Positions 3,712 to 64,000 of a DNA stretch of 64,000 nucleotides are shown here, one piece after another. The notes under the pieces were generated by a model. It had not been told where the DNA came from. It ran no database searches and saw only the letters and a list, made by a program, of their open reading frames with translations. How positions within the stretch are numbered: the stretch's first letter is position 1; every line of letters starts with the position of its first letter. This stretch comes from Carpediemonas membranifera BICM (taxonomy: Eukaryota > Protista > Fornicata). A program made the translations under genes and the position numbers. Where the stretch lies: assembly GCA_019828565.1 (NCBI GenBank), contig JAHDYR010000017.1, positions 185,360-249,359 of the forward strand, in the 5' to 3' direction.

Positions 3712-4830
3712 TCACTGCCTTAGCAGCTTGAACCAAAACTTGACCTCAGCGGCCGCCTCAGTGGGCAAGTCGGTCACGTGGACCGCGTTCTTGGCCACGG
3801 ACTTGCCGTACTTCCCTCTGAGGCTGTCTGGTGCGACTGTCCTTGCAATGGCAGGGTCAGAAGGGCCCGCGAGCTCCCTTAGCTCCGCCTGGGCGTTCTC
3901 GCCGGTCACCTCCAAGGCAACAACGGGTCCCGAGCTGAGCTCGTCGACCAGACCCTGATAGTCCTGGTGGACACCACGGTAAATCTCATAGAAGTCGGCG
4001 GCGTCCGACTTATCGACGATAAACATCTCCATGGCTGTTACATTAAACCCTTCCTCCAGGATTTTGGAGATGATCTCGCCGAGGTTGGGGAGGGAGTGCC
4101 GCGGGATAAGGACGAGAGAGGACTTCTCGAACGTGGCGGTGGTGGGGAAGTACCCGGGTCGGCCGAAGAAGAACGCGATCTCTCGCTCAGCAGACGCGGG
4201 TGAGTCGGAGCCGTGTACTGCGTTGTATGTGTTGTTGCGGGCGAACTTCGCTCTGATGCTGTTGGGGGCTTCCATACGGGCGCGGTCCTTCTCCGTTGGA
4301 CCCATCAAACGGCGCCAGGCAGAGATTGCAGAGGGACCCATGAGCTCCATGGCGACAATGGGCTCAGAGATCATCATCTCCACGAGGTTATCGAAGAATG
4401 GCTTTCCTTGGTGCTCTGCATAGAACTCCATGGCGTCTTCACGAGAGAGGACGAGCATCTGGAGGCGGATGATCTTCAGACCTGCTCTGGCGATCTCAGT
4501 CATCACTTGGCCGATGTGATCGTACATTCCGGGCTTGATGAGAGCCAGTGTCTTCTCGGACTGAGCCTCAAAATGACGGGCAGTGAAATCGTTTGTGTAA
4601 GACACAATCTTGAGCTGGCGGGAATGCACAGTGACGCAGTTACCAACAAAAAGATCAGCCAACTGGAGAGAAGGATAGGGTGAGCGTTTGAGGAAGGGGC
4701 GGCGGTTCTTGACGTCGAGCATCTCGATGTCGTTGTTGGAGAGGAAATATGACAGAACATATGGCCTCTCAAGGTCAGCAACGTCATCATACCAGGTCAC
4801 ATTAAAGCTATACTTCTCGTTCAAATCCAT
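3712..4830 (-). CDS. NME7: Nucleoside diphosphate kinase 7 (DM10 domain + two NDK domains), axonemal
   Basis: N-terminal DM10 (WYD...DVKNRRPFLKR), EKTLALIKP, NAVHGSDS, second NDK repeat NAVHVTDL. Confidence 0.93.
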   Translation of the reverse strand: MDLNEKYSFNVTWYDDVADLERPYVLSYFLSNNDIEMLDVKNRRPFLKRSPYPSLQLADLFVGNCVTVHSRQLKIVSYTNDFTARHFEAQSEKTLALIKPGMYDHIGQVMTEIARAGLKIIRLQMLVLSREDAMEFYAEHQGKPFFDNLVEMMISEPIVAMELMGPSAISAWRRLMGPTEKDRARMEAPNSIRAKFARNNTYNAVHGSDSPASAEREIAFFFGRPGYFPTTATFEKSSLVLIPRHSLPNLGEIISKILEEGFNVTAMEMFIVDKSDAADFYEIYRGVHQDYQGLVDELSSGPVVALEVTGENAQAELRELAGPSDPAIARTVAPDSLRGKYGKSVAKNAVHVTDLPTEAAAEVKFWFKLLRQ

Positions 4831-46694: not shown

Positions 46695-46730
46695 TGTTGC
46701 GCAGTATAAACAGATTGTTCGAAGCCTCCA
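46695..46730 (+). repeat. Direct repeat copy 1 (3' side of Fanzor B); overlaps hairpin 46691-46716
   Basis: TGTTGCGCAGTATAAACAGATTGTTCGAAGCCTCCA; 30/36 identical to 47781-47816. Confidence 0.85.
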
Positions 46731-46774
46731 GACAGGGCCTGAAAGGAACGATCAAAGTGCCAAACTGCACAACA

Positions 46775-47630
46775 TCATCCGTCCGTAGATGAATGTTGGC
46801 GGTTAACCAATTGATGATACTGGAATGATGTTGGAAGGCGCGGGATCGAGGTGCGACTGAATGGAGAGCCACCGAGCTCATCTTCCGTGGCAAGAGAACG
46901 CCACAGGATGTTCTCTGCAGCACTCTTGTCCCGATGATCAACATTCAGAGCATCAGGAACTGTTGCGCGCCACTGAGCACCACGGCACTGTGGATTTTCG
47001 CAGAGCATCACACGTTGTGGGTGAACGTGCTGGTCATCACGCGGACGAACTCGCTTGTAGGGGGCGTGGCAGTGAGGGCAGACGACGGTGGTGCGGTCCT
47101 CGTTAACCATGTTAAGATCGACGACAATGTTATACCCCTTGAGAAGGGGTACTATCTCTCTCGCGAACTTTCGATATGGCGCGCAAGGAATGAACATACC
47201 AGCAGGCGTGGTGAATCCCGAGCTCCCGTAGAAGACTTTCAGGCGAATGGGGGTGGCGATGGGATGGTGGCGACCGAACTCCCGAGCCAACTGTTGGCCG
47301 CAGCGGGCGAAGTGCTTCTGGCGAAGGATGTGGTTCGCAAAGCGCACTAGGCGGAAAGACTTACGCATTCCAGCCTCGAAAATGTCGTTCGCGTTGTCCA
47401 GCACAAACCTAATAGTTGTTGATACTCACTAGTCTTGTGCTCTTGAACGACGCGGCCGTCATATCGAAGCCGAAACTTGGCGTCTTAGTGTATCCGCACT
47501 TTGGAAGGACGCCGGAGCTGGTGGTGCCATCGGGGTGCCTGATGTAATACCCTCCGATGGACCTCGCGCCCGGGTCGAACCCCATGAGGTGGGCATCAGG
47601 ATCCGGCGCGGGCGGAGCCTCGGCATTATT
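46775..47630 (-). pseudogene. N-terminally truncated Fanzor (TnpB-like RuvC nuclease) with a frameshift at ~47415
   Basis: Reads AEAPPAPDPDAHLMGFDPGARSIGGYYIRHPDG...KCGYTKTPSF...AASFKST, then shifts to IRFVLDN...FANHILRQKHFARCG...VFYG...CAPYRKFAR...VNEDRTTVVCPHC...MLCENPQC...HRDKSAAENILW; collinear with 52301-54229. Confidence 0.85.
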
Positions 47631-47780
47631 GGATGTGGAATAGAAGACAATGAGACGACGTGTGAGCGATTGTGATGTTTGCAGCTGTGCTGACGTCCAC
47701 GAAGAAGACGCTTTGTGGAAGCCCTGGAGAAGACGATCTCCCTACCGACTTAAGACGTGAGTAGGAGGGAGACAGGGCAG

Positions 47781-47816
47781 TGTTGCGCAGTATAAACACA
47801 TTGTTGGACCCTTCAA
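47781..47816 (+). repeat. Direct repeat copy 2 (5' side of Fanzor B)
   Basis: TGTTGCGCAGTATAAACACATTGTTGGACCCTTCAA; first 25 nt match copy 1 at 24 positions. Confidence 0.85.
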
Positions 47817-47895
47817 TAGCACATAATCGCCCATCCAAACCTGCTCGAAAGCAGATCGCTGCTCATCTGAAAGGACCATCCAAGTCGGAATAGAA

Positions 47896-48843: not shown

Positions 48844-49017
48844 TAAATATGAGGCAGGGTAGTGGGGGTGGTGTTGGCCAGCGCCGTGGCCGGTAGGGGG
48901 CCTGTTATGCCCACTATGATACGCTTCACACCCATCAGTCGATCTAGAAGACCGAAGGAATGACGTCAAAATGACTCGCAGTTTAACCCCTCGAAATCTT
49001 CACTAGCACCAAAACAG

Positions 49018-51105: not shown

Positions 51106-51203
51106 GGGTTGGGTGTTTGAATAGTGAGGGGTGGTTCTTGTTTTAAAGCAGTCTCTTGTTTGTTTAAAGGGTGTTTGCGATTTGGACTTTAAAGAGATAT
51201 TTA

Positions 51204-52124
51204 TTACACGATGTCACCCTCTATGCGCTTAATCTGCACGGCCATGCCCCTGCCGACCAGTTCCATGGTCTTTCTCACCACACCATCGTACTGCCTCCAT
51301 GTGGCGAGGGTACCCCAGAACACCAGTGAAGCGCACGCAGCCCCCAGTAAAGAGCCGGAAAGCACGTCTGTCGGGAAGTGGTGGTTGTCTAGGGTCCGCG
51401 TGATACCGACCCACGCAGGGAAGAGCAAGGGTGTTGTCAGCAGTGAGGCTGTTACCACCACGGGGATGGAATGAATGGCGATGAAGATCGCTCGGCGGGT
51501 GTTGAGAACCACTGTGGCCAGATGAGGGTGGCCTTTTGATGTCGGTCTGCAGTGCGTCTTTGCGAGGTAGAGGAGGAAGAACCAGAGGAAGCAAGTGAGG
51601 CTGAGGCCGACAGACCAGGAGAGGGAAGAGTGGCCGCTCGGCCAAGACAGCCGGCCCTCGAAGATGGTGGTGGCATAGCCGGTGCAGACTCCGTCGACCG
51701 GCTGACAGCGGTCGAGGAAGTCGGGACGGAGGCGGCCGGCGGCGAGCTTCAGGGCATTCGTGAGGAACATTGTGAGGGTGAAAGAGATGTCGGGGGCTAC
51801 TGCGAAGAGTGGTGCGGCAGGACCAACGGCAGGGGAGGCGTAGCCGAGCAGGGCGATGCCGAGCATGCCGTAGTTCTTGACCTTTCGATACAAAGAGCCG
51901 TTAACGATGCTTGGCTGGTGTTCTTTGGATATTGAAGAGTCTTTGACGTCGAAAGGGCGTTCAACAAGCCATTCGGCGTGGTCTTGAGGGAATGAGTTGG
52001 CTGGAGAGTACAATAGCTGTGATATCACAAGGAGAAAGATGCTGAGGATCAAGAAGCTAATATATGGCAACAATATGATGAGTAGTGCCTTCGATCGCTG
52101 TTTGTATTCGTCTTTCACGCTCAT
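51204..52124 (-). CDS. PAP2 lipid phosphate phosphatase (DPP1-like)
   Basis: KLAAGRLRPDFLDRC, SWPSGHSS, TRTLDNHHFPTDVLSG; first ATG at 52124. Confidence 0.92.
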   Translation of the reverse strand: MSVKDEYKQRSKALLIILLPYISFLILSIFLLVISQLLYSPANSFPQDHAEWLVERPFDVKDSSISKEHQPSIVNGSLYRKVKNYGMLGIALLGYASPAVGPAAPLFAVAPDISFTLTMFLTNALKLAAGRLRPDFLDRCQPVDGVCTGYATTIFEGRLSWPSGHSSLSWSVGLSLTCFLWFFLLYLAKTHCRPTSKGHPHLATVVLNTRRAIFIAIHSIPVVVTASLLTTPLLFPAWVGITRTLDNHHFPTDVLSGSLLGAACASLVFWGTLATWRQYDGVVRKTMELVGRGMAVQIKRIEGDIV

Positions 52125-52149: not shown

Positions 52150-52320
52150 GGGTAAGTGTGCCACGCAGGATAAGAATACTTGAGTCCAAAACACACAGTG
52201 ATCCGAGCAGCATCAGGATCGCAGTGTGGTTCATCATACTCTATCAATCGTGCGCTGCATATCACGCGCGCTGCAGCGCGTGCTTGCTCAACTTAGCAAG
52301 TTAATGATAGCGAGGAAGAG
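52150..52320 (-). ncRNA. Candidate Fanzor omega-RNA (scaffold + 3' guide); boundaries unknown
   Basis: Immediately 3' of the Fanzor stop, with consecutive stem-loops at 52283-52300, 52263-52282 and 52192-52228; position is as expected for an omega-RNA, expression is unproven. Confidence 0.5.
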
Positions 52321-54229
52321 CACCTCTCTGGGAGTCGTAGTGGAAAGGAGATTGCTCTATCTGATCTGAAGTTGCATCGAAGGTGCACCAAAGGATGTTC
52401 TCGCTGGCGCTCTTATCTCGGTGAGAGAGATTGAGAAGTATGTCTCTCTGCTCGGGATGCCGACGTAGCCGTTCAACGCGCCATGGAGCTCCCTCGCACG
52501 CGGGATTCTGGCAGAGCATGGTGCGGTATGTGTGCACCACACGTCTGAAGTGTGCTTTGCAGTATGGGCACACGATGGAAGTGCGGAATTCCGAGACCAT
52601 CGTGACACTCACGACGACGTTGTGCCAGAGCATGATGCCAGGGAGAGCTCGAGCAAAGTGTCGGTACGGAGCACAGGAGGGAGTGCCGGCGGAACCGAAT
52701 AGTGCAGCCCCATACGCGACTTCGAGGTGAATGGGCTCCGGGGGGCGCCCGCCGAGATCATCCAGGAGTTGACGTCCAGCCCGGGCGAAGTGCTTCAGGC
52801 GCAGACAGTGATTGGCAAAAGTCGCACGGCGGAAACACTTTCTCGTCCCCTCGTTAATGATCTGAACGATGTTCTCATGGACAAACCTAATCGACTGTTT
52901 GAGAGCCTCTAGACTTGTCGTTTTGAACGATGCTGCGCTCACATTCACGCGGAAAGAGGGGGTGGCAGTGTAGCCACACTTAGCGAGCACGCCAGATACA
53001 CTCTGCCCGTCTGGGCGGCGGATCGTGTAGCCGCCCAGCGACCGAGCACCAGGGTCGAAGCCCATGAGAGCTTGAATGTCCGGGGCAGGAGTAGCCTCGG
53101 CGTCATCCTGACCGAGCCGAGCCCGCTTGTTATTGCTACCCTTTTTGTACGTGGGCCGGTCAGCCACCCGACCGCCACGGTATTTCTCGCGACCCACCCA
53201 AACCGTCACAACAGCAGAGACCCCGTCAGTCCTCACAGAGAGCACTCTGCGGAGCTTGGTGATGTCGCCGTGATCACGCTCGTATTCAGCCACCTGCTCG
53301 TCGGTCAAATTCTTGGTTGCTGACCAATTCACGTGCACACGCAGGCGCCTCTTCATCGCTGGGGTGAGCGCTGTTACTCCGCGATCGATGGTCATGAACC
53401 CAGGCCTGACCGGTGCCATCGGCACGAACGGAACGAGCTTCGGCTCTGGCAGGGCCTGACTGAGCTCGAGGTTCACGGCACGAGTGAGTGTGACCAGCTT
53501 GGTCACTGCAGCACTCATGCGCGTGACGCACGACAGCACGCCGACGAGGGCCTCGGCCACGGTACCAGTGTGACCCACCCGTTGCCCCTCGGGCGATGCA
53601 TGTATTTGAGGATGATACCTGTCATGATCGGCGGCTATGGCGGCAACCTCAGTGTCGAGCTCGCCTCTGGTGTCGAGAAAATCCTGTCGAACACCCGGCT
53701 GATCATGGAGGAGCGGACGCACCCGTTCTAATCCAGCACGAAGACGGGTCAGGTACCCGGGTGACGCGCGCGAGAGCCAGACCCGGGTGGATGTGGAGTA
53801 CTCGCCCAACCAGGTGTCAAATTGCTTGCACAAGCCAATGTAGCTATAAGCCGTGACGAAGTCCTGGACGAGTGGGGTTATGTCAGGGTCCCTCCACATC
53901 GCCAGGTCGCCAATCCACCTGCACCGATCCGCTGCCTTTGCCTTCGACACCTTTTGCTGAGCAATGCTGACGATCTGCTTGAGGACCTCCTGGTCGAACA
54001 GGTTGACCGTCCTCGGTGGGGTCAACGCGTGCGCAGATGCAGAGACGCACGCAAGCAGGCAAGTGAATGTGTCCTTAGCCTGCGCGAAAGAACGCATGCC
54101 GGGTTCAAGATTTCCTCGCCGCGGCGCGTTGTTATCGCCTCCACCGTTAATCTCGCCAATGGCCTTGTTAACGGAAGCCTTCACCGTGTATATCTTGGAA
54201 GGCATCGGAGTATATTGAGCTGCCTGCAT
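52301..54229 (-). CDS. Fanzor (Fanzor1-like eukaryotic TnpB/Cas12-related RNA-guided endonuclease), intact, copy A
   Basis: SVRTDGVSAVV, RuvC-I MGFDPG, VAYG, RuvC-II VSEFRTS, zinc finger CPYC...CQNPAC, RuvC-III HRDKSASENI; 642 aa, uninterrupted ORF. Confidence 0.88.
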   Translation of the reverse strand: MQAAQYTPMPSKIYTVKASVNKAIGEINGGGDNNAPRRGNLEPGMRSFAQAKDTFTCLLACVSASAHALTPPRTVNLFDQEVLKQIVSIAQQKVSKAKAADRCRWIGDLAMWRDPDITPLVQDFVTAYSYIGLCKQFDTWLGEYSTSTRVWLSRASPGYLTRLRAGLERVRPLLHDQPGVRQDFLDTRGELDTEVAAIAADHDRYHPQIHASPEGQRVGHTGTVAEALVGVLSCVTRMSAAVTKLVTLTRAVNLELSQALPEPKLVPFVPMAPVRPGFMTIDRGVTALTPAMKRRLRVHVNWSATKNLTDEQVAEYERDHGDITKLRRVLSVRTDGVSAVVTVWVGREKYRGGRVADRPTYKKGSNNKRARLGQDDAEATPAPDIQALMGFDPGARSLGGYTIRRPDGQSVSGVLAKCGYTATPSFRVNVSAASFKTTSLEALKQSIRFVHENIVQIINEGTRKCFRRATFANHCLRLKHFARAGRQLLDDLGGRPPEPIHLEVAYGAALFGSAGTPSCAPYRHFARALPGIMLWHNVVVSVTMVSEFRTSIVCPYCKAHFRRVVHTYRTMLCQNPACEGAPWRVERLRRHPEQRDILLNLSHRDKSASENILWCTFDATSDQIEQSPFHYDSQRGALPRYH

Positions 54230-54371
54230 CGATCATTTCTTTTCAGAGTTCATCAGCTAGCAGCATCCCTCAAAATACAAGAAACCAGCATCATACAACA
54301 CAAAGCGTCTTTACTACCAGCTACAACCGCTTTCCACCACTAGTGTCTCTCACAACAGACTAAGATGACGA

Positions 54372-54641
54372 AGACGACGACGACATGAGCTTCAGACGCC
54401 GGCAATGGACGACAGATGAGCGTGTAACAGACGAGCACAGACGCGAAAGAAGACAGCAGCGTTCGACACAGACGATGGACGACGCATCTTTTCGTGCAGA
54501 TCGACGACTGAAAGCACGAAAGCCTGATGGTGCAGACGAGGGCTGAAGTGGGTGGAGGTAGTGTGCTGCGCAGGATTAGAATTGTTGAGTCTAAAGTTCT
54601 GGTGTACGACAGGTGGGCCGTCAGACTGAACCTGTTCAGTC
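54372..54641 (-). repeat. Putative left-end region of Fanzor A: six AGACG direct repeats, end motif 54561-54587, palindrome 54624-54641
   Basis: AGACG at 54372, 54394, 54429, 54439, 54470, 54534; TGCTGCGCAG..ATTGTTG resembles the copy-B repeat; GACTGAAC-CT-GTTCAGTC. Confidence 0.55.
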
Positions 54642-54883
54642 CTCTGGAGTTCATCCCAGGGGGGTCGACAGCTTAAGTCACCTTTACATGAATCCTCCAC
54701 ATAAACCTCTAAATACCACAGTAAGTAGACATAAACTGCGCTGCGGACCACAGGACACGCACCCATGACACACTGCTCCAGGTAGTCCCATACTGCCACT
54801 GTATCACCATCCATTCGAGCCCGATGCTGTTCATTGCACCTGCCACCATATCTCCCTCACCATTCAACCTGTCTTTAAATACA

Positions 54884-55661
54884 TTACAATGATCTCGCCT
54901 CATTCACCTTAAAGCACGTCGCCTCGAGCAGGTCGATGAGGATCGCTTCGCCTTCCTGCCGAGCCTTGGCCTCATCAGCTAAAAGCCCGTTCAGCTTGTC
55001 CGTCACCGTTTCAAACTTATCCATGAGATTCTGGTGGACGTTCTGGCCCTTGATCCGATCAGCCTCGAGGTTAGACCGCAGTTTCTTGAGCTCAACGTCG
55101 ATCGCCTGCTCGAGCTCTTCATCTGCCTCCTGGCCTAGCTCAATCACCTCGTTGAGCTCTTCTTGCAGGCGGGAGACGTCAGTAGTCGCGGCGTTCTCAC
55201 GCTGGGAGCGCATGTTCTCGGCCTGGGTCGAGTCCTGCTCGAACTCACGAACGACGGCATCGAGGCGGGACTGTAGGGCGCTAATCAGGCGAGCCTCGCT
55301 AGACTCACGCTCCTTGACAAGAGAAGAGAGATTGAGGCGGAGCGTAGCGTCTACATCGGCTGTTGCGTTGCCGTCATCCTTGTGCTCCTCGGGGCTGGAA
55401 GGAATAGCCTCCTTCAACTGCGCAAGGTTATCCTCCAGGAATGCAATGCGCTCATTTCTAAGGCGCTCCAGGTCATGATACTTATCATTGAGCTCGGAGT
55501 TGAGCTGCTCGTAGCGGTGCGTTGTCTGGCGCCTCTCATTCTGAGTAATCGGGTAAATGGTGACGTACAGTGAGCGTCTGTGAGAGAGATTCAAGCTTGC
55601 TGTTGAATTGCATGAGACGGCTCTGCTTGTGGTCGCCGGGAGCGTAGTTCTCGAAATTCAT
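54884..55661 (-). CDS. SF-assemblin/beta-giardin family striated-fibre protein, intron 55541-55568
   Basis: Short head plus long coiled coil ending EAKARQEGEAILIDLLEATC; 28-nt GTACGT..CTCAG intron links ATG 55661. Confidence 0.78.
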
Positions 55662-55946
55662 TTCAATTCACTCGGCTCGTTGAGTTAAAGTGCGGCGCCA
55701 AATTTCCTCAATCAGAGCCCCCCACCAATGTGTCAGCCTGCTACAACTCCCTACCTCCAATAGGTCAACAGAAACCTGCAATGGCTTCTGGGAATTTGAA
55801 CAAAATTACAAACTCAACCAGAGAAATATTAAAAAGACAGCCGTCGCTACCGGTAGTATGCGGGTAGTGGCACACGGTCAGACGGAGGCCAGGGTCGGGA
55901 ATGCTCAGTGGAAATTGCAGAAGCACGTTTAGACTCACGGCGCGAT

Positions 55947-58384: not shown

Positions 58385-58723
58385 TGTTTTCTGGCCGAAA
58401 TCCGTCATGCCTGGCACAAACGGGCAATTGCTTCGTTTGCTGCCGGAGGTCGGCGACGCTCCCACTCACACCACCAGCACATTAGAGTCTTCTAAAATCG
58501 CCCCGGATGCAATGACCGCGTCTTATTGTCTTTTTAGCTGTGAAAGACTTGCAGTCCCGGATGCCTTCTGAAAGCTGTTCAGAACCCTGTGTGCAGCTCT
58601 CACAAGGAAGGGAGTGCAGTATTTCGGTCACGAACCTGTGGGTGGCATCTGTGGTGAGCCACAGAACCGAAAGAATGGTGATCCAACTTTACATAAACTG
58701 CACCCTGTGCCTGGAACGCCACA
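58385..58723 (-). repeat. LTR copy 1 (339 bp, TGT...ACA), preceded by PPT GAGGGCAGGA (58724-58733)
   Basis: On the minus strand the purine tract is followed by TGTGGCG... and ends ...CAGAAAACA exactly where identity with copy 2 stops. Confidence 0.75.
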
Positions 58724-59260
58724 TCCTGCCCTCATGAGTTCCCGACATCCACCGTTGCACGGGTAGTGAGTGGATGACGGACTCATTGTCTGAGCCCTCC
58801 TCTGAGAGCTCGTCGTAAGACAGCCACTTGATGAGAAGCTTGTCGTCCGCGGTGACACCGATGACGGACTCGACATAGAACTCCTCGGTATCTCCAGCCT
58901 GCAGGGCTGCGAGATCCTCAGGTGTCTCGTCTGTGGGTTCCACGCGTATGAGCTGGTCCGCATGGACGGTCTTCTGCTCGCTGCCCCGAGGAGGGGCGCG
59001 ATGGTGACGGCGTTTAAGTCGCCGAGCCCTACCACCTTGTATGGTCCTAGGTGGCCGTGGAGCTTTGTCGGGTGCTGGTTCTTCATGAGTACCATGTCGC
59101 CGAGCTGTAAGGGGTCGTCTGGAACAATTGCCCGCTTCTTGACGTGGTCGCTCTGCGACTCGACCGCGATAGCAGTCATCTGGCTCAAGTGTCCTTCTAG
59201 AGCCGTAATGTACTCACGGACTGAGTGGATAGGTTCATCCACCTCGTCCGCTGCCTCTTC
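58689..59260 (-). pseudogene. Integrase C-terminal fragment (GPY/F motif + chromodomain), inverted relative to gag-pol; frameshift at ~58985
   Basis: EYITALEGHL...LQLGDMVLMK...LGPYKVV, then TVHADQLIRV...EEFYVESVIGV...LLIKWLSYDE. Confidence 0.8.
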
Positions 59261-59433
59261 TCCCTGGACCGTGTATGGTTTAATGAAAGCAACGAACTTC
59301 CGCAGTTTAGGGTCACACTGTAGCTTATAGCTATCAGTATATATATAATACTGACCATATTCACCACAGAAGGTTTACTCATAAATTCATTCTCGCTTAG
59401 CCCGGCTTAGGCATCAGTAATTACTGGCCCTTA

Positions 59434-62400
59434 ATGAACGAGAATACGCCTCTCCTGAAAATCCTGACATTCCAGTCTCTGTTCAAATTCCTATCGTCGT
59501 ATGACGATTACAGCTTGAGAACTGGCAAGAAGCGTTCCCCGCTGCACGAACTCATATCCTCTCCGGTTTACCTCGAGCTCGAGGCACAAGAGACGCCATT
59601 CAGACTCTCTGACGTCCCCGAGCTTGTCATCAACGACGAGACGCTATCAAAGAAAGACAAGACGAGAAATGAGAATGATCACATCGACAAGCATGTCCGA
59701 GATGCCTTGACGAAGTTCGTCCGCCCCACTGACCCGTTCACCATGTCCCAAGTGTTCGATCGTAAGGCTCCTGGCCGAAAGCCCGGCCAGGTCGCTCAGT
59801 ACATCAATCAAAACAAGCTCATCTCGACAATCTTTCCCCCATCCTCCGTCGGTATTGACTACGTGCGTGAGTCCTTCATCAACGGCTTTGAAGACAAGAT
59901 CTTCAAGCAACAGCTAACCTCAATGACTCACAACCTCACTATCGACGACCTCTACAAGGTCACATTGGACCACGCTCGGAACGTCGAAGAAGCCCTTAAG
60001 ATCGCTACTCCATTCTTCCGCCCAGCTCCCCCATCAGCTCTCCACGAAACAAAGCGACCTCCACTCAAACCCGATGACAAGAGAACGACGAAGGAAGGCC
60101 GCCGAGAACCCCCGAAACCATCTAACCTCAACTGCTCATACTGCGGCAAGCATGGTCACTCTGAGGACATATGCTTCGCCAAGAAAAAGGGCATCCCCAA
60201 GTGTAACTACTGCTCACGCCTTGGACACCTCGAAGTTGATTGCCGCAAGAAGCTGAACCAGGGGCCTGTAAATCCCCTCAAGTATGCTTTCCTTAACGTG
60301 ATCAGAGAGTCCTCCCCAGGTGAAGTTCTTGGATGCGACGGTCTCCTTGAACATGCTATTGTCAGAATTCTACTCGATACAGGTGCCTCCACAAACTACA
60401 TCAAAGAGGAGCTTGCCACCAATATACAGATCGATCCCCTCATTGTTAGTTTCGCAAATGGCAAAGAAACGATGTCCAAGGGGTTTACAACAGTTCCACT
60501 GATGATCAAGGCCAACGAGCTCAACAGGTACGATCTCTCCACTACTATAGAGGCTCATGTCCTCCCAGACATGCCCTTTGACATCATTATCGGGTTCCCC
60601 ACCATGAAGAGCCTTGGTCTCCTGAGACTGATGGCCCCGGATGAGCCCAGCAACGAACTCACTGACGAAGAACAGCAGTTAGACAGGAGCTACGCCTGCA
60701 GCTCGGTCAACACTGAGATTGAGGCTCCGTACAAGGAAGTTATCGACAAACACGCCGCTGCCTTCGGAGACCTCACCCAAGAACCATCCACTCTCTCTCC
60801 TTTCTCCCTCAAACTGAAACAAGGGGTTCACTCCACATCACAACGCCCCTACCCGGTCCCTGAATGGAAGCTAGAGGAGATCAAGTCCCACGTCGAAAAG
60901 CTGAAAGGCCTAGGGGTTATCGAACCGTCACAGAGCCCATGGGGGTCACCCGTGGTGCTCACCGCCAAAAAGAACACGCAGAAGACCAGAATGTGCGTGA
61001 ACTATCAGAAGATTAACACCGTCACGGAAGAATTTGACTACCCCCTACCTAGGATCGATGAAACGATCGACTTCCTCGCGAAGGGGAGATATTTCGCGAC
61101 AATCGACATGGCCAGTGGCTACCACCAAATACCACTCGCTGATGAAACTTCGATGGACCTCACGACGTTCGTGACGCATCTAGGCCGCTACAGATATAGA
61201 CGGATGCCATTTGGCCTTAAGCAAGCTGGTGCTCACTTCCAGTACGCTATGGAAGTCGCGTTTGGAGACCTCCTGTACGAGAAGTGCCTCATATACCAGG
61301 ATGATGTCGTCATCTTCGGCAGTACCCCGGACCAGTTAGCTCAAAATCTCGACTTGGTCCTTACCAGATGTGAGGAAAAGGGCATCCGCCTCAATCTCGA
61401 CAAATCCCAGTTTGGTCTCGAGCAGTTTGAGTACCTCGGTTGGCTAATCACGAAGGACGGCAAGCAGATCGACCCAGACAGAGTCTCGGCTATTACGCGC
61501 ATGACGAGACCCCAGACAACGTCAAGTACAAGACAGTTCCTAGGACTCGTTAACTTCTTCCACGATTACCTTGGCGCTGACTTCGCCGACGTGTCAAAGC
61601 CTCTGTACGACGCCATGAACAGTCGTCCCTTCACTTGGACCGATGAGTGCGACGTAGCCTTCAAGACCATACAATCTAGGATGACGTCAGCCCCTACCCT
61701 AGTACACTTCGACCCACGTAAGAAGCTGACCTTAATCACAGATGCATCAGATGTCGGAGTCGGGGGCGTGCTCCTACAAGACGGACAACCTCTTCTTTAC
61801 ATGTCTAAGGCCCTTGACAGAGTGAAACAGAAGTGGCCCACGATTGAGAAGGAGTGCTTCGGTATAATCCACTGCCTCAAGAAGGCCGAGCGCTACCTCC
61901 GGTGGAGCCCATTTGAAATCCTCACTGATCACAACAACCTGGTTCATCTCCATCGTTCCACCAACGCCAAGGTCGGCAGGTGGAGACTGCTCATGGAGCA
62001 GTTCGCCTATAGTATCAAACACGTCGCTGGTGTTGACAATGGGGCCGCTGGTGGTCTCTCGCGCCTCTTCACCATTGACGGTGACGATCGGACAACACTC
62101 ATCCTCCGACACCACAAGGCCGCGGGCTGTCACCTCTCTACGAACCGCACAGTCAAGTCCCTTCGCGACCACGGCCATTCGTGGGCCAACCAGCGCCAGC
62201 ATGTCGCCGACCTGATCAAGTCCTGCCCGGTCTGCCAGAAGACCGTCCCCGGCCGCCCAATTGAGGCCGCGGAGCTCACCCTCTCATCGCCGGCTCCATG
62301 GCACACCCTCTGCGTGGACACTATGGGTCCATACCCTGAGTCACACGGATTCAAACACATCCTCGTCATGGTCGACCTATTCTCACGGTACGTGGAGATG

Positions 62401-62565
62401 GTTCCTATCAAATCGACTGGCGCCCAAGAAGCTGCAGATGTTATCTATAAGTGCTGTTTTCTGGCCGAAATCCGTCATGCCTGGCACAAACGGGCAATTG
62501 CTTCGTTTGCTGCCGGAGGTCGGCGACGCTCCCACTCACACCACCAGCACATTAGAGTCTTCTAA
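59434..62565 (+). CDS. Gag-Pol polyprotein (2 CCHC knuckles, protease, RT, RNase H, integrase N-part); integrase broken at 62454
   Basis: CSYCGKHGHSEDIC, CNYCSRLGHLEVDC, LLDTGAS, MPFGL, YQDD, TDASDVGVGGVL, TDH, HHCC, CVDTMGP; the last ~36 codons derive from the inverted LTR. Confidence 0.95.
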   Translation: MNENTPLLKILTFQSLFKFLSSYDDYSLRTGKKRSPLHELISSPVYLELEAQETPFRLSDVPELVINDETLSKKDKTRNENDHIDKHVRDALTKFVRPTDPFTMSQVFDRKAPGRKPGQVAQYINQNKLISTIFPPSSVGIDYVRESFINGFEDKIFKQQLTSMTHNLTIDDLYKVTLDHARNVEEALKIATPFFRPAPPSALHETKRPPLKPDDKRTTKEGRREPPKPSNLNCSYCGKHGHSEDICFAKKKGIPKCNYCSRLGHLEVDCRKKLNQGPVNPLKYAFLNVIRESSPGEVLGCDGLLEHAIVRILLDTGASTNYIKEELATNIQIDPLIVSFANGKETMSKGFTTVPLMIKANELNRYDLSTTIEAHVLPDMPFDIIIGFPTMKSLGLLRLMAPDEPSNELTDEEQQLDRSYACSSVNTEIEAPYKEVIDKHAAAFGDLTQEPSTLSPFSLKLKQGVHSTSQRPYPVPEWKLEEIKSHVEKLKGLGVIEPSQSPWGSPVVLTAKKNTQKTRMCVNYQKINTVTEEFDYPLPRIDETIDFLAKGRYFATIDMASGYHQIPLADETSMDLTTFVTHLGRYRYRRMPFGLKQAGAHFQYAMEVAFGDLLYEKCLIYQDDVVIFGSTPDQLAQNLDLVLTRCEEKGIRLNLDKSQFGLEQFEYLGWLITKDGKQIDPDRVSAITRMTRPQTTSSTRQFLGLVNFFHDYLGADFADVSKPLYDAMNSRPFTWTDECDVAFKTIQSRMTSAPTLVHFDPRKKLTLITDASDVGVGGVLLQDGQPLLYMSKALDRVKQKWPTIEKECFGIIHCLKKAERYLRWSPFEILTDHNNLVHLHRSTNAKVGRWRLLMEQFAYSIKHVAGVDNGAAGGLSRLFTIDGDDRTTLILRHHKAAGCHLSTNRTVKSLRDHGHSWANQRQHVADLIKSCPVCQKTVPGRPIEAAELTLSSPAPWHTLCVDTMGPYPESHGFKHILVMVDLFSRYVEMVPIKSTGAQEAADVIYKCCFLAEIRHAWHKRAIASFAAGGRRRSHSHHQHIRVF

Positions 62566-62793
62566 AATCGCCCCGGATGCAATGACCGCGTCTTATTGTC
62601 TTTTTAGCTGTGAAAGACTTGCAGTCCCGGATGCCTTCTGAAAGCTGTTCAGAACCCTGTGTGCAGCTCTCACAAGGAAGGGAGTGCAGTATTTCGGTCA
62701 CGAACCTGTGGGTGGCATCTGTGGTGAGCCACAGAACCGAAAGAATGGTGATCCAACTTTACATAAACTGCACCCTGTGCCTGGAACGCCACA
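62455..62793 (-). repeat. LTR copy 2, PPT at 62794-62803
   Basis: Matches 58385-58723 with no difference seen by eye. Confidence 0.75.
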
Positions 62794-63330
62794 TCCTGCC
62801 CTCATGAGTTCCCGACATCCACCGTTGCACGGGTAGTGAGTGGATGACGGACTCATTGTCTGAGCCCTCCTCTGAGAGCTCGTCGTAAGACAGCCACTTG
62901 ATGAGAAGCTTGTCGTCCGCGGTGACACCGATGACGGACTCGACATAGAACTCCTCGGTATCTCCAGCCTGCAGGGCTGCGAGATCCTCAGGTGTCTCGT
63001 CTGTGGGTTCCACGCGTATGAGCTGGTCCGCATGGACGGTCTTCTGCTCGCTGCCCCGAGGAGGGGCGCGATGGTGACGGCGTTTAAGTCGCCGAGCCCT
63101 ACCACCTTGTATGGTCCTAGGTGGCCGTGGAGCTTTGTCGGGTGCTGGTTCTTCATGAGTACCATGTCGCCGAGCTGTAAGGGGTCGTCTGGAACAATTG
63201 CCCGCTTCTTGACGTGGTCGCTCTGCGACTCGACCGCGATAGCAGTCATCTGGCTCAAGTGTCCTTCTAGAGCCGTAATGTACTCACGGACTGAGTGGAT
63301 AGGTTCATCCACCTCGTCCGCTGCCTCTTC
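62759..63330 (-). pseudogene. Second inverted integrase C-terminus/chromodomain fragment
   Basis: Identical translation to 58689-59260, including the frameshift. Confidence 0.8.
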
Positions 63331-63503
63331 TCCCTGGACCGTGTATGGTTTAATGAAAGCAACGAACTTCCGCAGTTTAGGGTCACACTGTAGCTTATAG
63401 CTATCAGTATATATATAATACTGACCATATTCACCACAGAAGGTTTACTCATAAATTCATTCTCGCTTAGCCCGGCTTAGGCATCAGTAATTACTGGCCC
63501 TTA

Positions 63504-64000
63504 ATGAACGAGAATACGCCTCTCCTGAAAATCCTGACATTCCAGTCTCTGTTCAAATTCCTATCGTCGTATGACGATTACAGCTTGAGAACTGGCAAGA
63601 AGCGTTCCCCGCTGCACGAACTCATATCCTCTCCGGTTTACCTCGAGCTCGAGGCACAAGAGACGCCATTCAGACTCTCTGACGTCCCCGAGCTTGTCAT
63701 CAACGACGAGACGCTATCAAAAGAAAGACAAGACGAGAAATGAGAATGATCACATCGACAAGCATGTCCGAGATGCCTTGACGAAGTTCGTCCGCCCCAC
63801 TGACCCGTTCACCATGTCCCAAGTGTTCGATCGTAAGGCTCCTGGCCGAAAGCCCGGCCAGGTCGCTCAGTACATCAATCAAAACAAGCTCATCTCGACA
63901 ATCTTTCCCCCATCCTCCGTCGGTATTGACTACGTGCGTGAGTCCTTCATCAACGGCTTTGAAGACAAGATCTTCAAGCAACAGCTAACCTCAATGACTC
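63504..64000 (+). pseudogene. Start of second gag-pol copy, with an extra A at ~63721
   Basis: Same sequence as 59434 onward except TCAAAAG versus TCAAAG. Confidence 0.8.

Follow-up and report, generated by a model that had tools for sequence, protein, structure and literature searches.

Fanzor1 nucleases such as SpuFz1 and the Fz1 of Guillardia theta (Bao and Jurka 2013, PMC3627910) are proteins of about 630 residues that display a TDG…DPG arrangement, an RD motif and a glutamate located six residues before a C4 zinc finger. They are carried by multi-copy elements that lack a transposase of their own, and their genes are followed by a 3′ non-coding tail that reaches the element end, the position at which the omega-RNA of known Fanzors is found (PMC13565253). 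The same 2026 review knows of no retrotransposon that encodes a Fanzor, and our literature search found no paper naming Fanzor together with Carpediemonas. Here we describe a gene that shares these protein and element features, located in a 64,000-nucleotide stretch of DNA (the window) from Carpediemonas membranifera, an organism that a first-pass annotation of the sequence had correctly placed among the metamonads. In contrast to the known Fanzor1 systems, the window protein has no sequence homologue beyond Carpediemonas membranifera, its carrier is bounded by direct repeats rather than by TIRs or Helitron ends, and its insertion point has no fixed adjoining TAM. The gene is almost certainly a real, mobile Fanzor1.

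The Fanzor1-type ORF lies on the minus strand (52301–54229) and spans 642 residues. Inspection of the reading frame confirmed that it is uninterrupted and that it contains every motif quoted in the first-pass annotation: TDG at residue 334, GFDPG at 390, VAYG at 504, SEFRTS at 546, CPYC at 554, CQNPAC at 573 and HRDKS at 603. The catalytic residues are Asp392 (53054–56), Glu547 (52589–91) and Asp605 (52415–17), and the C4 finger is formed by Cys554, Cys557, Cys573 and Cys578. Because codon 6 is a stop (TAG) in 14 of 29 other copies of the gene, translation probably starts at Met9 (position 54205), which would yield a protein of 634 residues. Asp392 is retained in 29/29 copies, and a rough dN/dS of 0.56 was obtained from variants common to at least three family copies. 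Among the 30 best loci of the genome, the window gene is the sole complete ORF.

The published regular expressions for Fanzor1 and Fanzor2 (bioRxiv 10.1101/2023.08.09.552727) were used to classify the protein. The Fanzor1 expression matched residues 392–611, comprising the DPG, the glutamate six residues before the zinc finger and the RD, and was found in 0 of 20,000 shuffled sequences; the Fanzor2 expression gave no match in the window protein. Single-sequence searches of the protein against Pfam, NCBIfam and the PDB were without a match, and sequence searches for outside homologues returned only Carpediemonas proteins. When a profile of the C-terminal half was compared with the PDB, the top match was Guillardia theta Fanzor1 (9cer), which was weak (E 0.1) and had the motifs in order. 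An Atlas model (feature score 0.98) aligned over residues 9–635 with giant-virus PF07282/DUF8286 clusters at TM values of 0.59–0.64, a comparison of one predicted structure with another at a pLDDT of 0.60. This agrees with the Fanzor1 architecture, a fold of about 600–700 residues whose REC/WED half is expanded. Our own AlphaFold models were poor (pLDDT 37 and 34), and fold searches with them gave no significant match. The signature, the Atlas matches and the weak 9cer profile match back the earlier reading of the gene as a Fanzor1 whose catalytic triad is intact; by signature and predicted fold the protein is a Fanzor1, a probably RNA-guided nuclease related to CRISPR-Cas12. The first-pass annotation had also called the N-terminal half unrecognisable, which holds for sequence, there being no homologue outside the species, but not for structure, since this half alone maps on the DUF8286 Fanzor-like family in the Atlas with a TM of 0.58 over 266 residues. 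One further copy of the same family (P0001) is labelled “cytosine deaminase” in public databases, apparently wrongly.

A genome copy-number check did away with the picture of a single-copy gene: we found at least 82 Fanzor protein matches, the full-length ones being 79–97% identical; nearly all copies are broken. The 41-nt repeat found at the element end (see below) had 204 matches in the genome, compared with 0 for the control. Many internally deleted derivatives keep both element ends; introns were rejected as the cause of these deletions, whose boundaries are not GT-AG. Besides this family, denoted A, the window holds an internally deleted and broken copy of a sister family B on the minus strand (46695–47823; 46% amino-acid identity), about 5 kb from the window Fanzor; the first-pass annotation had overlooked this copy, together with the element boundaries and the copy number. 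Its layout is the same as that of the family-A element, with repeats at 46695–46719 and 47781–47823, a GATTA duplication and a target motif at 47835–47844. The family-B repeat had 230 genome matches, and the target motif precedes 66 family-B left ends in a genome pattern search. A third Fanzor family (P0013/P0014, ∼47% identical) with intact signature was seen at L052:367–1497 and in the L008 and L016 flanks, and family-A elements are inserted into it. The Fanzor1 signature is present in all three Carpediemonas families, which are ∼45–50% identical to each other.

The family-A element in the window extends from 52157 to 54720, with its TGTGG end at 54720, its GCACA end at 52157 and the 5-bp target-site duplication CTTAC on both sides (52152–52156 on the right and 54721–54725 on the left, minus strand). 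The first-pass annotation had noted no adjacent transposase, and none lies inside the element. At the Fanzor 3′ end the element is closed by a 41-nt terminal repeat (52157–52197), which ends in …GCACA, begins with TGTG when read on the plus strand and contains a promoter-like motif at 52165–52174; nearly all copies share the sharp end at 52157. The left terminal repeat is split into an inner part of 34 nt (54562–54595) and an outer part of 13 nt (54708–54720; TGTGG… on the minus strand) by an inserted arm described below. Directly before it, and antisense to Fanzor, lies a polypurine-tract-like run on the plus strand (54542–54561) ending GGAGGTAG. In families A and B alike, GGTAG or GGCAG closes the purine tract that precedes the full repeat; with 15–17 purines in 20 positions, such tracts are only modestly rare, occurring in 0.4–4% of windows. 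The terminal repeats are of the TG…CA type and direct, not inverted, the only inverted repeat in the element ends being one of 4 nt (TGTG/CACA).

The two repeats of the window copy differ at 6 of 36 nt, and a systematic difference at the outer-left part is seen across copies. A terminal variant was concordant between both repeats of the same copy in 17 of 25 cases (null expectation 10.0, p 0.002), and an inner repeat variant was not (p 0.17); copying of U3 would be expected to give concordance of the terminal but not the inner variant. At two loci (L013 and L018) a solo repeat is flanked by a duplication. No tRNA primer site was found, as no TGG start follows position 52197, a result that leaves room for priming by something other than a tRNA. 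Three copies (L002, L007 and L024) are left-truncated, lack the TGT end and have duplications of 8–11 bp that start at the usual place, which possibly arose when a break made at the empty site was repaired. The terminal repeats are themselves hot spots for further insertions: inserts of 68–110 nt with 6–14-bp duplications lie inside the terminal repeat in the right repeats of L025 and L028 and in L045. Comparison of L045:1438–1520 with the left flank of L020 showed a new insertion that carries ∼60 nt of another copy’s flank and yet a longer LINE arm than that copy.

Four sequencing runs, all of a single sample, have the character of RNA data, with a spliced intron and a poly-T end. RNA-like contigs tile the element and stop at 52157 without crossing into the window flank, and their joints match deleted derivatives such as L060. 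The 144 nt between the Fanzor stop codon and the element end (52157–52300, minus strand) are conserved and covered by these contigs; this tail gave a fold z-score of −0.86, no covariation and no Rfam match. By analogy with known Fanzors the omega-RNA would be expected here, and we regard the tail as the putative scaffold, for which the flank beyond 52157 would serve as guide. Adapter-like tails near 52172–52183 hint at an antisense RNA start, in contigs that cannot show strand or level.

Insertions of the element have a preferred target. In the window, the motif GCAGTTTATG (GCA-N3-TA) lies at 54730–54739 on the minus strand and is the probable core promoter of a PAP2 gene with its ATG at 52124. 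Genome-wide, the duplication was recovered 14–16 nt after the left GCA-N3-TA motif at 27 of 40 right ends (one locus counted twice), compared with a duplication of at least 5 nt in 1 of 380 mismatched flank pairs. Insertion takes place in one orientation relative to the motif, and the element usually sits just before a host ATG: in 19/37 copies an ORF of at least 60 codons begins no more than 40 nt from the right end, versus ∼15% of random window positions evaluated with a similar threshold. The related pattern GCASTTTAWG occurs 26 times in the window, with 8.9 occurrences expected, and the GCA-N3-TA motif is probably a host core promoter. Two further instances of the pattern, at 55684–55693 and 48978–48987, lie 12 nt before the end of a neighbour’s cDNA contig and 40 nt before a 695-residue ORF, respectively. 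The motif occupies positions −20 to −11 relative to the insertion point and is bipartite with a variable centre, and positions −10 to −1 have no consensus save a C bias at −9. As no consensus is found in the ten bases beside the insertion, the usual adjacent TAM is missing, which leaves homing unexplained.

The neighbours of the element had been described in the first-pass annotation as PAP2 and SF-assemblin. The former is supported by PF01569; the latter found no Pfam support (one exon searched), and the gene concerned is spliced and expressed, with a product that looks coiled-coil. A 28-nt intron is present at 55541 in this expressed gene. Over the PAP2 gene (51128–52111), which the insertion separates from the motif, no RNA-like contig was found, a gap that proves nothing.

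Resident Ty3/Gypsy elements share several of these features. One family (L054) has rve, H2C2 and Chromo domains and 92-nt LTRs, about a dozen pairs of which lie 4553 bp apart. Over the final 31 nt of this LTR, 30–31 positions agree with the family-B repeat, and the family-A and family-B repeats align with each other. The LTR of a second Gypsy family (L052) is identical in its first 11 nt to the family-A left end, that is, to the start of the outer 13 nt in the window. In each of the two Gypsy families the LTR is preceded by a purine tract that ends in GGTAG, and the GGTAG|TG junction of the window purine tract recurs in both. At the spacing seen for family B, the target motif precedes five Gypsy 5′-LTR starts, four of them within the 4553-bp LTR pairs. 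The L054 Gypsy has a 5-bp duplication and is nested 1 nt into a family-A end. The polarity of the ends differs, in that the Gypsy-U5-like end of the Fanzor element faces the motif, as opposed to the U3 end of Gypsy itself. A genome pattern search for a helper LTR that ends like family A and is followed by TGG found none. The window also contains a rearranged Ty3/Gypsy element in tandem (58385–64000; period 4070–4071), with gag-pol on the plus strand up to half of the integrase, an inverted piece resembling the integrase end and chromodomain on the minus strand, and a promoter-like motif at 58692 and 62762.

The arm that splits the left repeat (54596–54707, plus strand) is the 5′-truncated, 112-nt 3′ tail of an RLE-type non-LTR element, flanked by a TTTAGA duplication. 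Such an arm, 26–462 nt long elsewhere, is present in the left repeat of most copies; TTTAGA stands on both sides of it in 22 of 27 copies and its junctions carry untemplated bases. The left repeat is also found uninterrupted (L007 and L025), different LINE tails are stacked at one site in four copies (L010, L021, L025 and L042), and a long LINE copy lacks the element’s outer 13 nt. By eye, the arm’s family shows a C-terminal, PD-(D/E)xK-like endonuclease motif (EP…R-x-AD…D-VT…K…Y), although this stretch had no Pfam or PDB match. Like the target-specific RLE non-LTR retrotransposons (PMC4640811), the arm combines an RLE end, 5′ truncation and a single target site; unlike them, it has as its target the terminal repeat of another mobile element. 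Elsewhere in the genome (G000), a candidate long LINE copy lies at C1:1440917, a tandem array with a period of ∼1670 that holds a diverged LINE tail at C8:148066–156688, and open frames of 1391–1505 residues with a 39% identical endonuclease-like stretch at C10:333809, C26:444537 and C3:179090; these frames are candidates for an intact RLE LINE family. P0060 was rejected as the autonomous LINE, since it joins a host gene to a second LINE tail.

The carrier resembles the described types of mobile element to different degrees. Elements of the Crypton and Replitron type (PMC10288648, PMC3627910) likewise have direct rather than inverted termini, but their repeats measure a few bases and duplications are generally absent, and such a carrier is ruled out by the repeat length of 41 nt, the constant 5-bp duplication and the identity with LTR ends. 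Another likeness is to TRIM, Cassandra and LARD elements. These are non-autonomous LTR retrotransposons with short TG…CA direct repeats, a purine tract, a 5-bp duplication, solo repeats and no gag-pol, all of which the Fanzor carrier shares. Its repeats are, however, only 41–43 nt long and not identical, a tRNA primer site is missing and a gene coding for a nuclease lies within it in antisense; its likeness to a TRIM stops short of two defining features, identical LTRs and a tRNA primer site. Ty3 and Tf1 are promoter-targeting Ty3/Gypsy elements that also insert at a constant position with respect to a promoter, on or close to the start of transcription. The target here differs in being a short GCA-N3-TA motif common to helper and Fanzor units, which use it with opposite end polarity.

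On balance we favour the view that the element is non-autonomous and LTR-derived, carries nothing but the Fanzor1 gene and is mobilised in trans by a resident promoter-targeting Ty3/Gypsy, in agreement with the mobilisation in trans that the first-pass annotation had offered as one of two options. Insertion by a Gypsy-type integrase is very probable, and movement through an RNA intermediate somewhat likelier than a DNA route. The purine tracts, the LTR identity, the shared motif and the concordance of terminal variants favour Gypsy copying through an RNA antisense to Fanzor. With differing repeats, no tRNA primer site, no matching helper and reversed polarity, the element is not a canonical LTR element. 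The absence of a fixed TAM, the only modest rarity of the purine tracts and the three copies with 8–11-bp duplications and no TGT end also count against the favoured view. A rival reading is a cut-and-paste DNA element whose ends were once borrowed from Gypsy LTRs and which a DDE integrase, either Ginger-like or a free one of Gypsy type, moves as DNA, while Fanzor acts in restorative homing as in known OMEGA transposons. The TGT…ACA ends, the fixed 5-bp duplication, the many internal-deletion derivatives with both ends kept, the non-identical repeats and the missing primer site all suit such an element, which would also account for the retained active nuclease (dN/dS of shared variants about 0.56). 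We nevertheless regard it as rather unlikely, given an inverted repeat of no more than 4 nt, purine tracts correctly placed in two families and a terminal variant concordant within copies; no such transposase was seen either in the loci read.

The inverted, variable arm could alternatively be read as the signature of an RLE LINE retrocopy made by two-ended (twin) priming, with one nick primed on LINE RNA and the other on Fanzor RNA, a reading that had been prompted by the inverted ends of Giardia Genie 2. It agrees with an arm that consists of a LINE 3′ end, truncated to varying degrees and joined through untemplated bases, with the longer duplications of 5′-truncated copies (L002 and L024) and with the foreign flank carried by L045. 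The existence of the arm-bearing repeat in uninterrupted form largely refutes it, and the TTTAGA duplicated around the arm in 22 of 27 copies, the stacking of different tails at one site, the long LINE copy without the outer 13 nt, a readable family-B left end that has no arm (and whose offset looks fixed in the lists) and the use of the same target by family B and Gypsy also speak against it. Targeting of the element end by a LINE fits better, and we consider twin priming improbable. Tn7 and CAST elements have TGT…ACA ends, duplicate 5 bp and insert in a set orientation at a set distance from a motif, and by this resemblance Fanzor itself might guide insertion in a CAST-like manner. The motif, however, is bipartite with a variable centre and does not look like a guide match, it probably marks host promoters, and it is also used by Gypsy, which has no Fanzor in the part read, so that this possibility appears very faint. 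Domestication as a single-copy host nuclease, the other option of the first-pass annotation, would suit an intact ORF between host genes; for the family it is refuted by at least 82 copies that are nearly all broken and by target duplications, including a fresh one around the window copy, and we give it next to no credence.

Under the favoured view of a Gypsy-mobilised, LTR-derived element, the following cycle can be envisaged. Transcription of the element would start from the motif in the right repeat and run antisense to Fanzor, and Gypsy enzymes would reverse-transcribe this RNA, with the plus strand primed at the element’s own purine tract. As the element has no tRNA primer site, its outer left end would probably be borrowed from the helper’s strong-stop DNA; borrowing of this kind would explain both the difference in the outer-left repeat and the missing primer site. 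The cDNA would then be inserted by the Gypsy integrase, after which the captured host promoter would drive Fanzor mRNA and omega-RNA in the opposite direction. A flank-guided nuclease would putatively cut the empty allele, and repair would help the insertion spread. Separately, an RLE LINE would parasitise the left repeat at TTTAGA. The complete picture, in which an active Fanzor1 replicates via RNA on a primer-site-less mini-LTR with Gypsy enzymes and strong-stop DNA, lands in core promoters for its expression, is kept by driving its insertions into empty alleles with no fixed adjoining TAM and is parasitised by an end-specific LINE, is a tentative proposal.

Taken together, the window gene appears to travel on a mobile element as OMEGA passengers do, and the carrier, which the first-pass annotation had not recognised, is a more unusual feature than the Fanzor itself. 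What the window contributes is an intact copy, a test of concordance between repeats and a LINE that inserts at a specific site. The window copy is the one to assay, because its ORF is intact, alone among the 30 best loci, its 3′ tail is the native one and its empty site can be reconstructed. Since the insertion sites have no common adjoining motif, the TAM of the enzyme may be relaxed or displaced, which, if true, would be relevant to genome editing. The catalytic residues are retained in three Fanzor families, two of them on carriers with Gypsy insertion marks, and this offers a direct test of the restorative-homing theory. For the organism itself, the data suggest that this free-living fornicate has a core-promoter motif and a Gypsy integrase that targets promoters.
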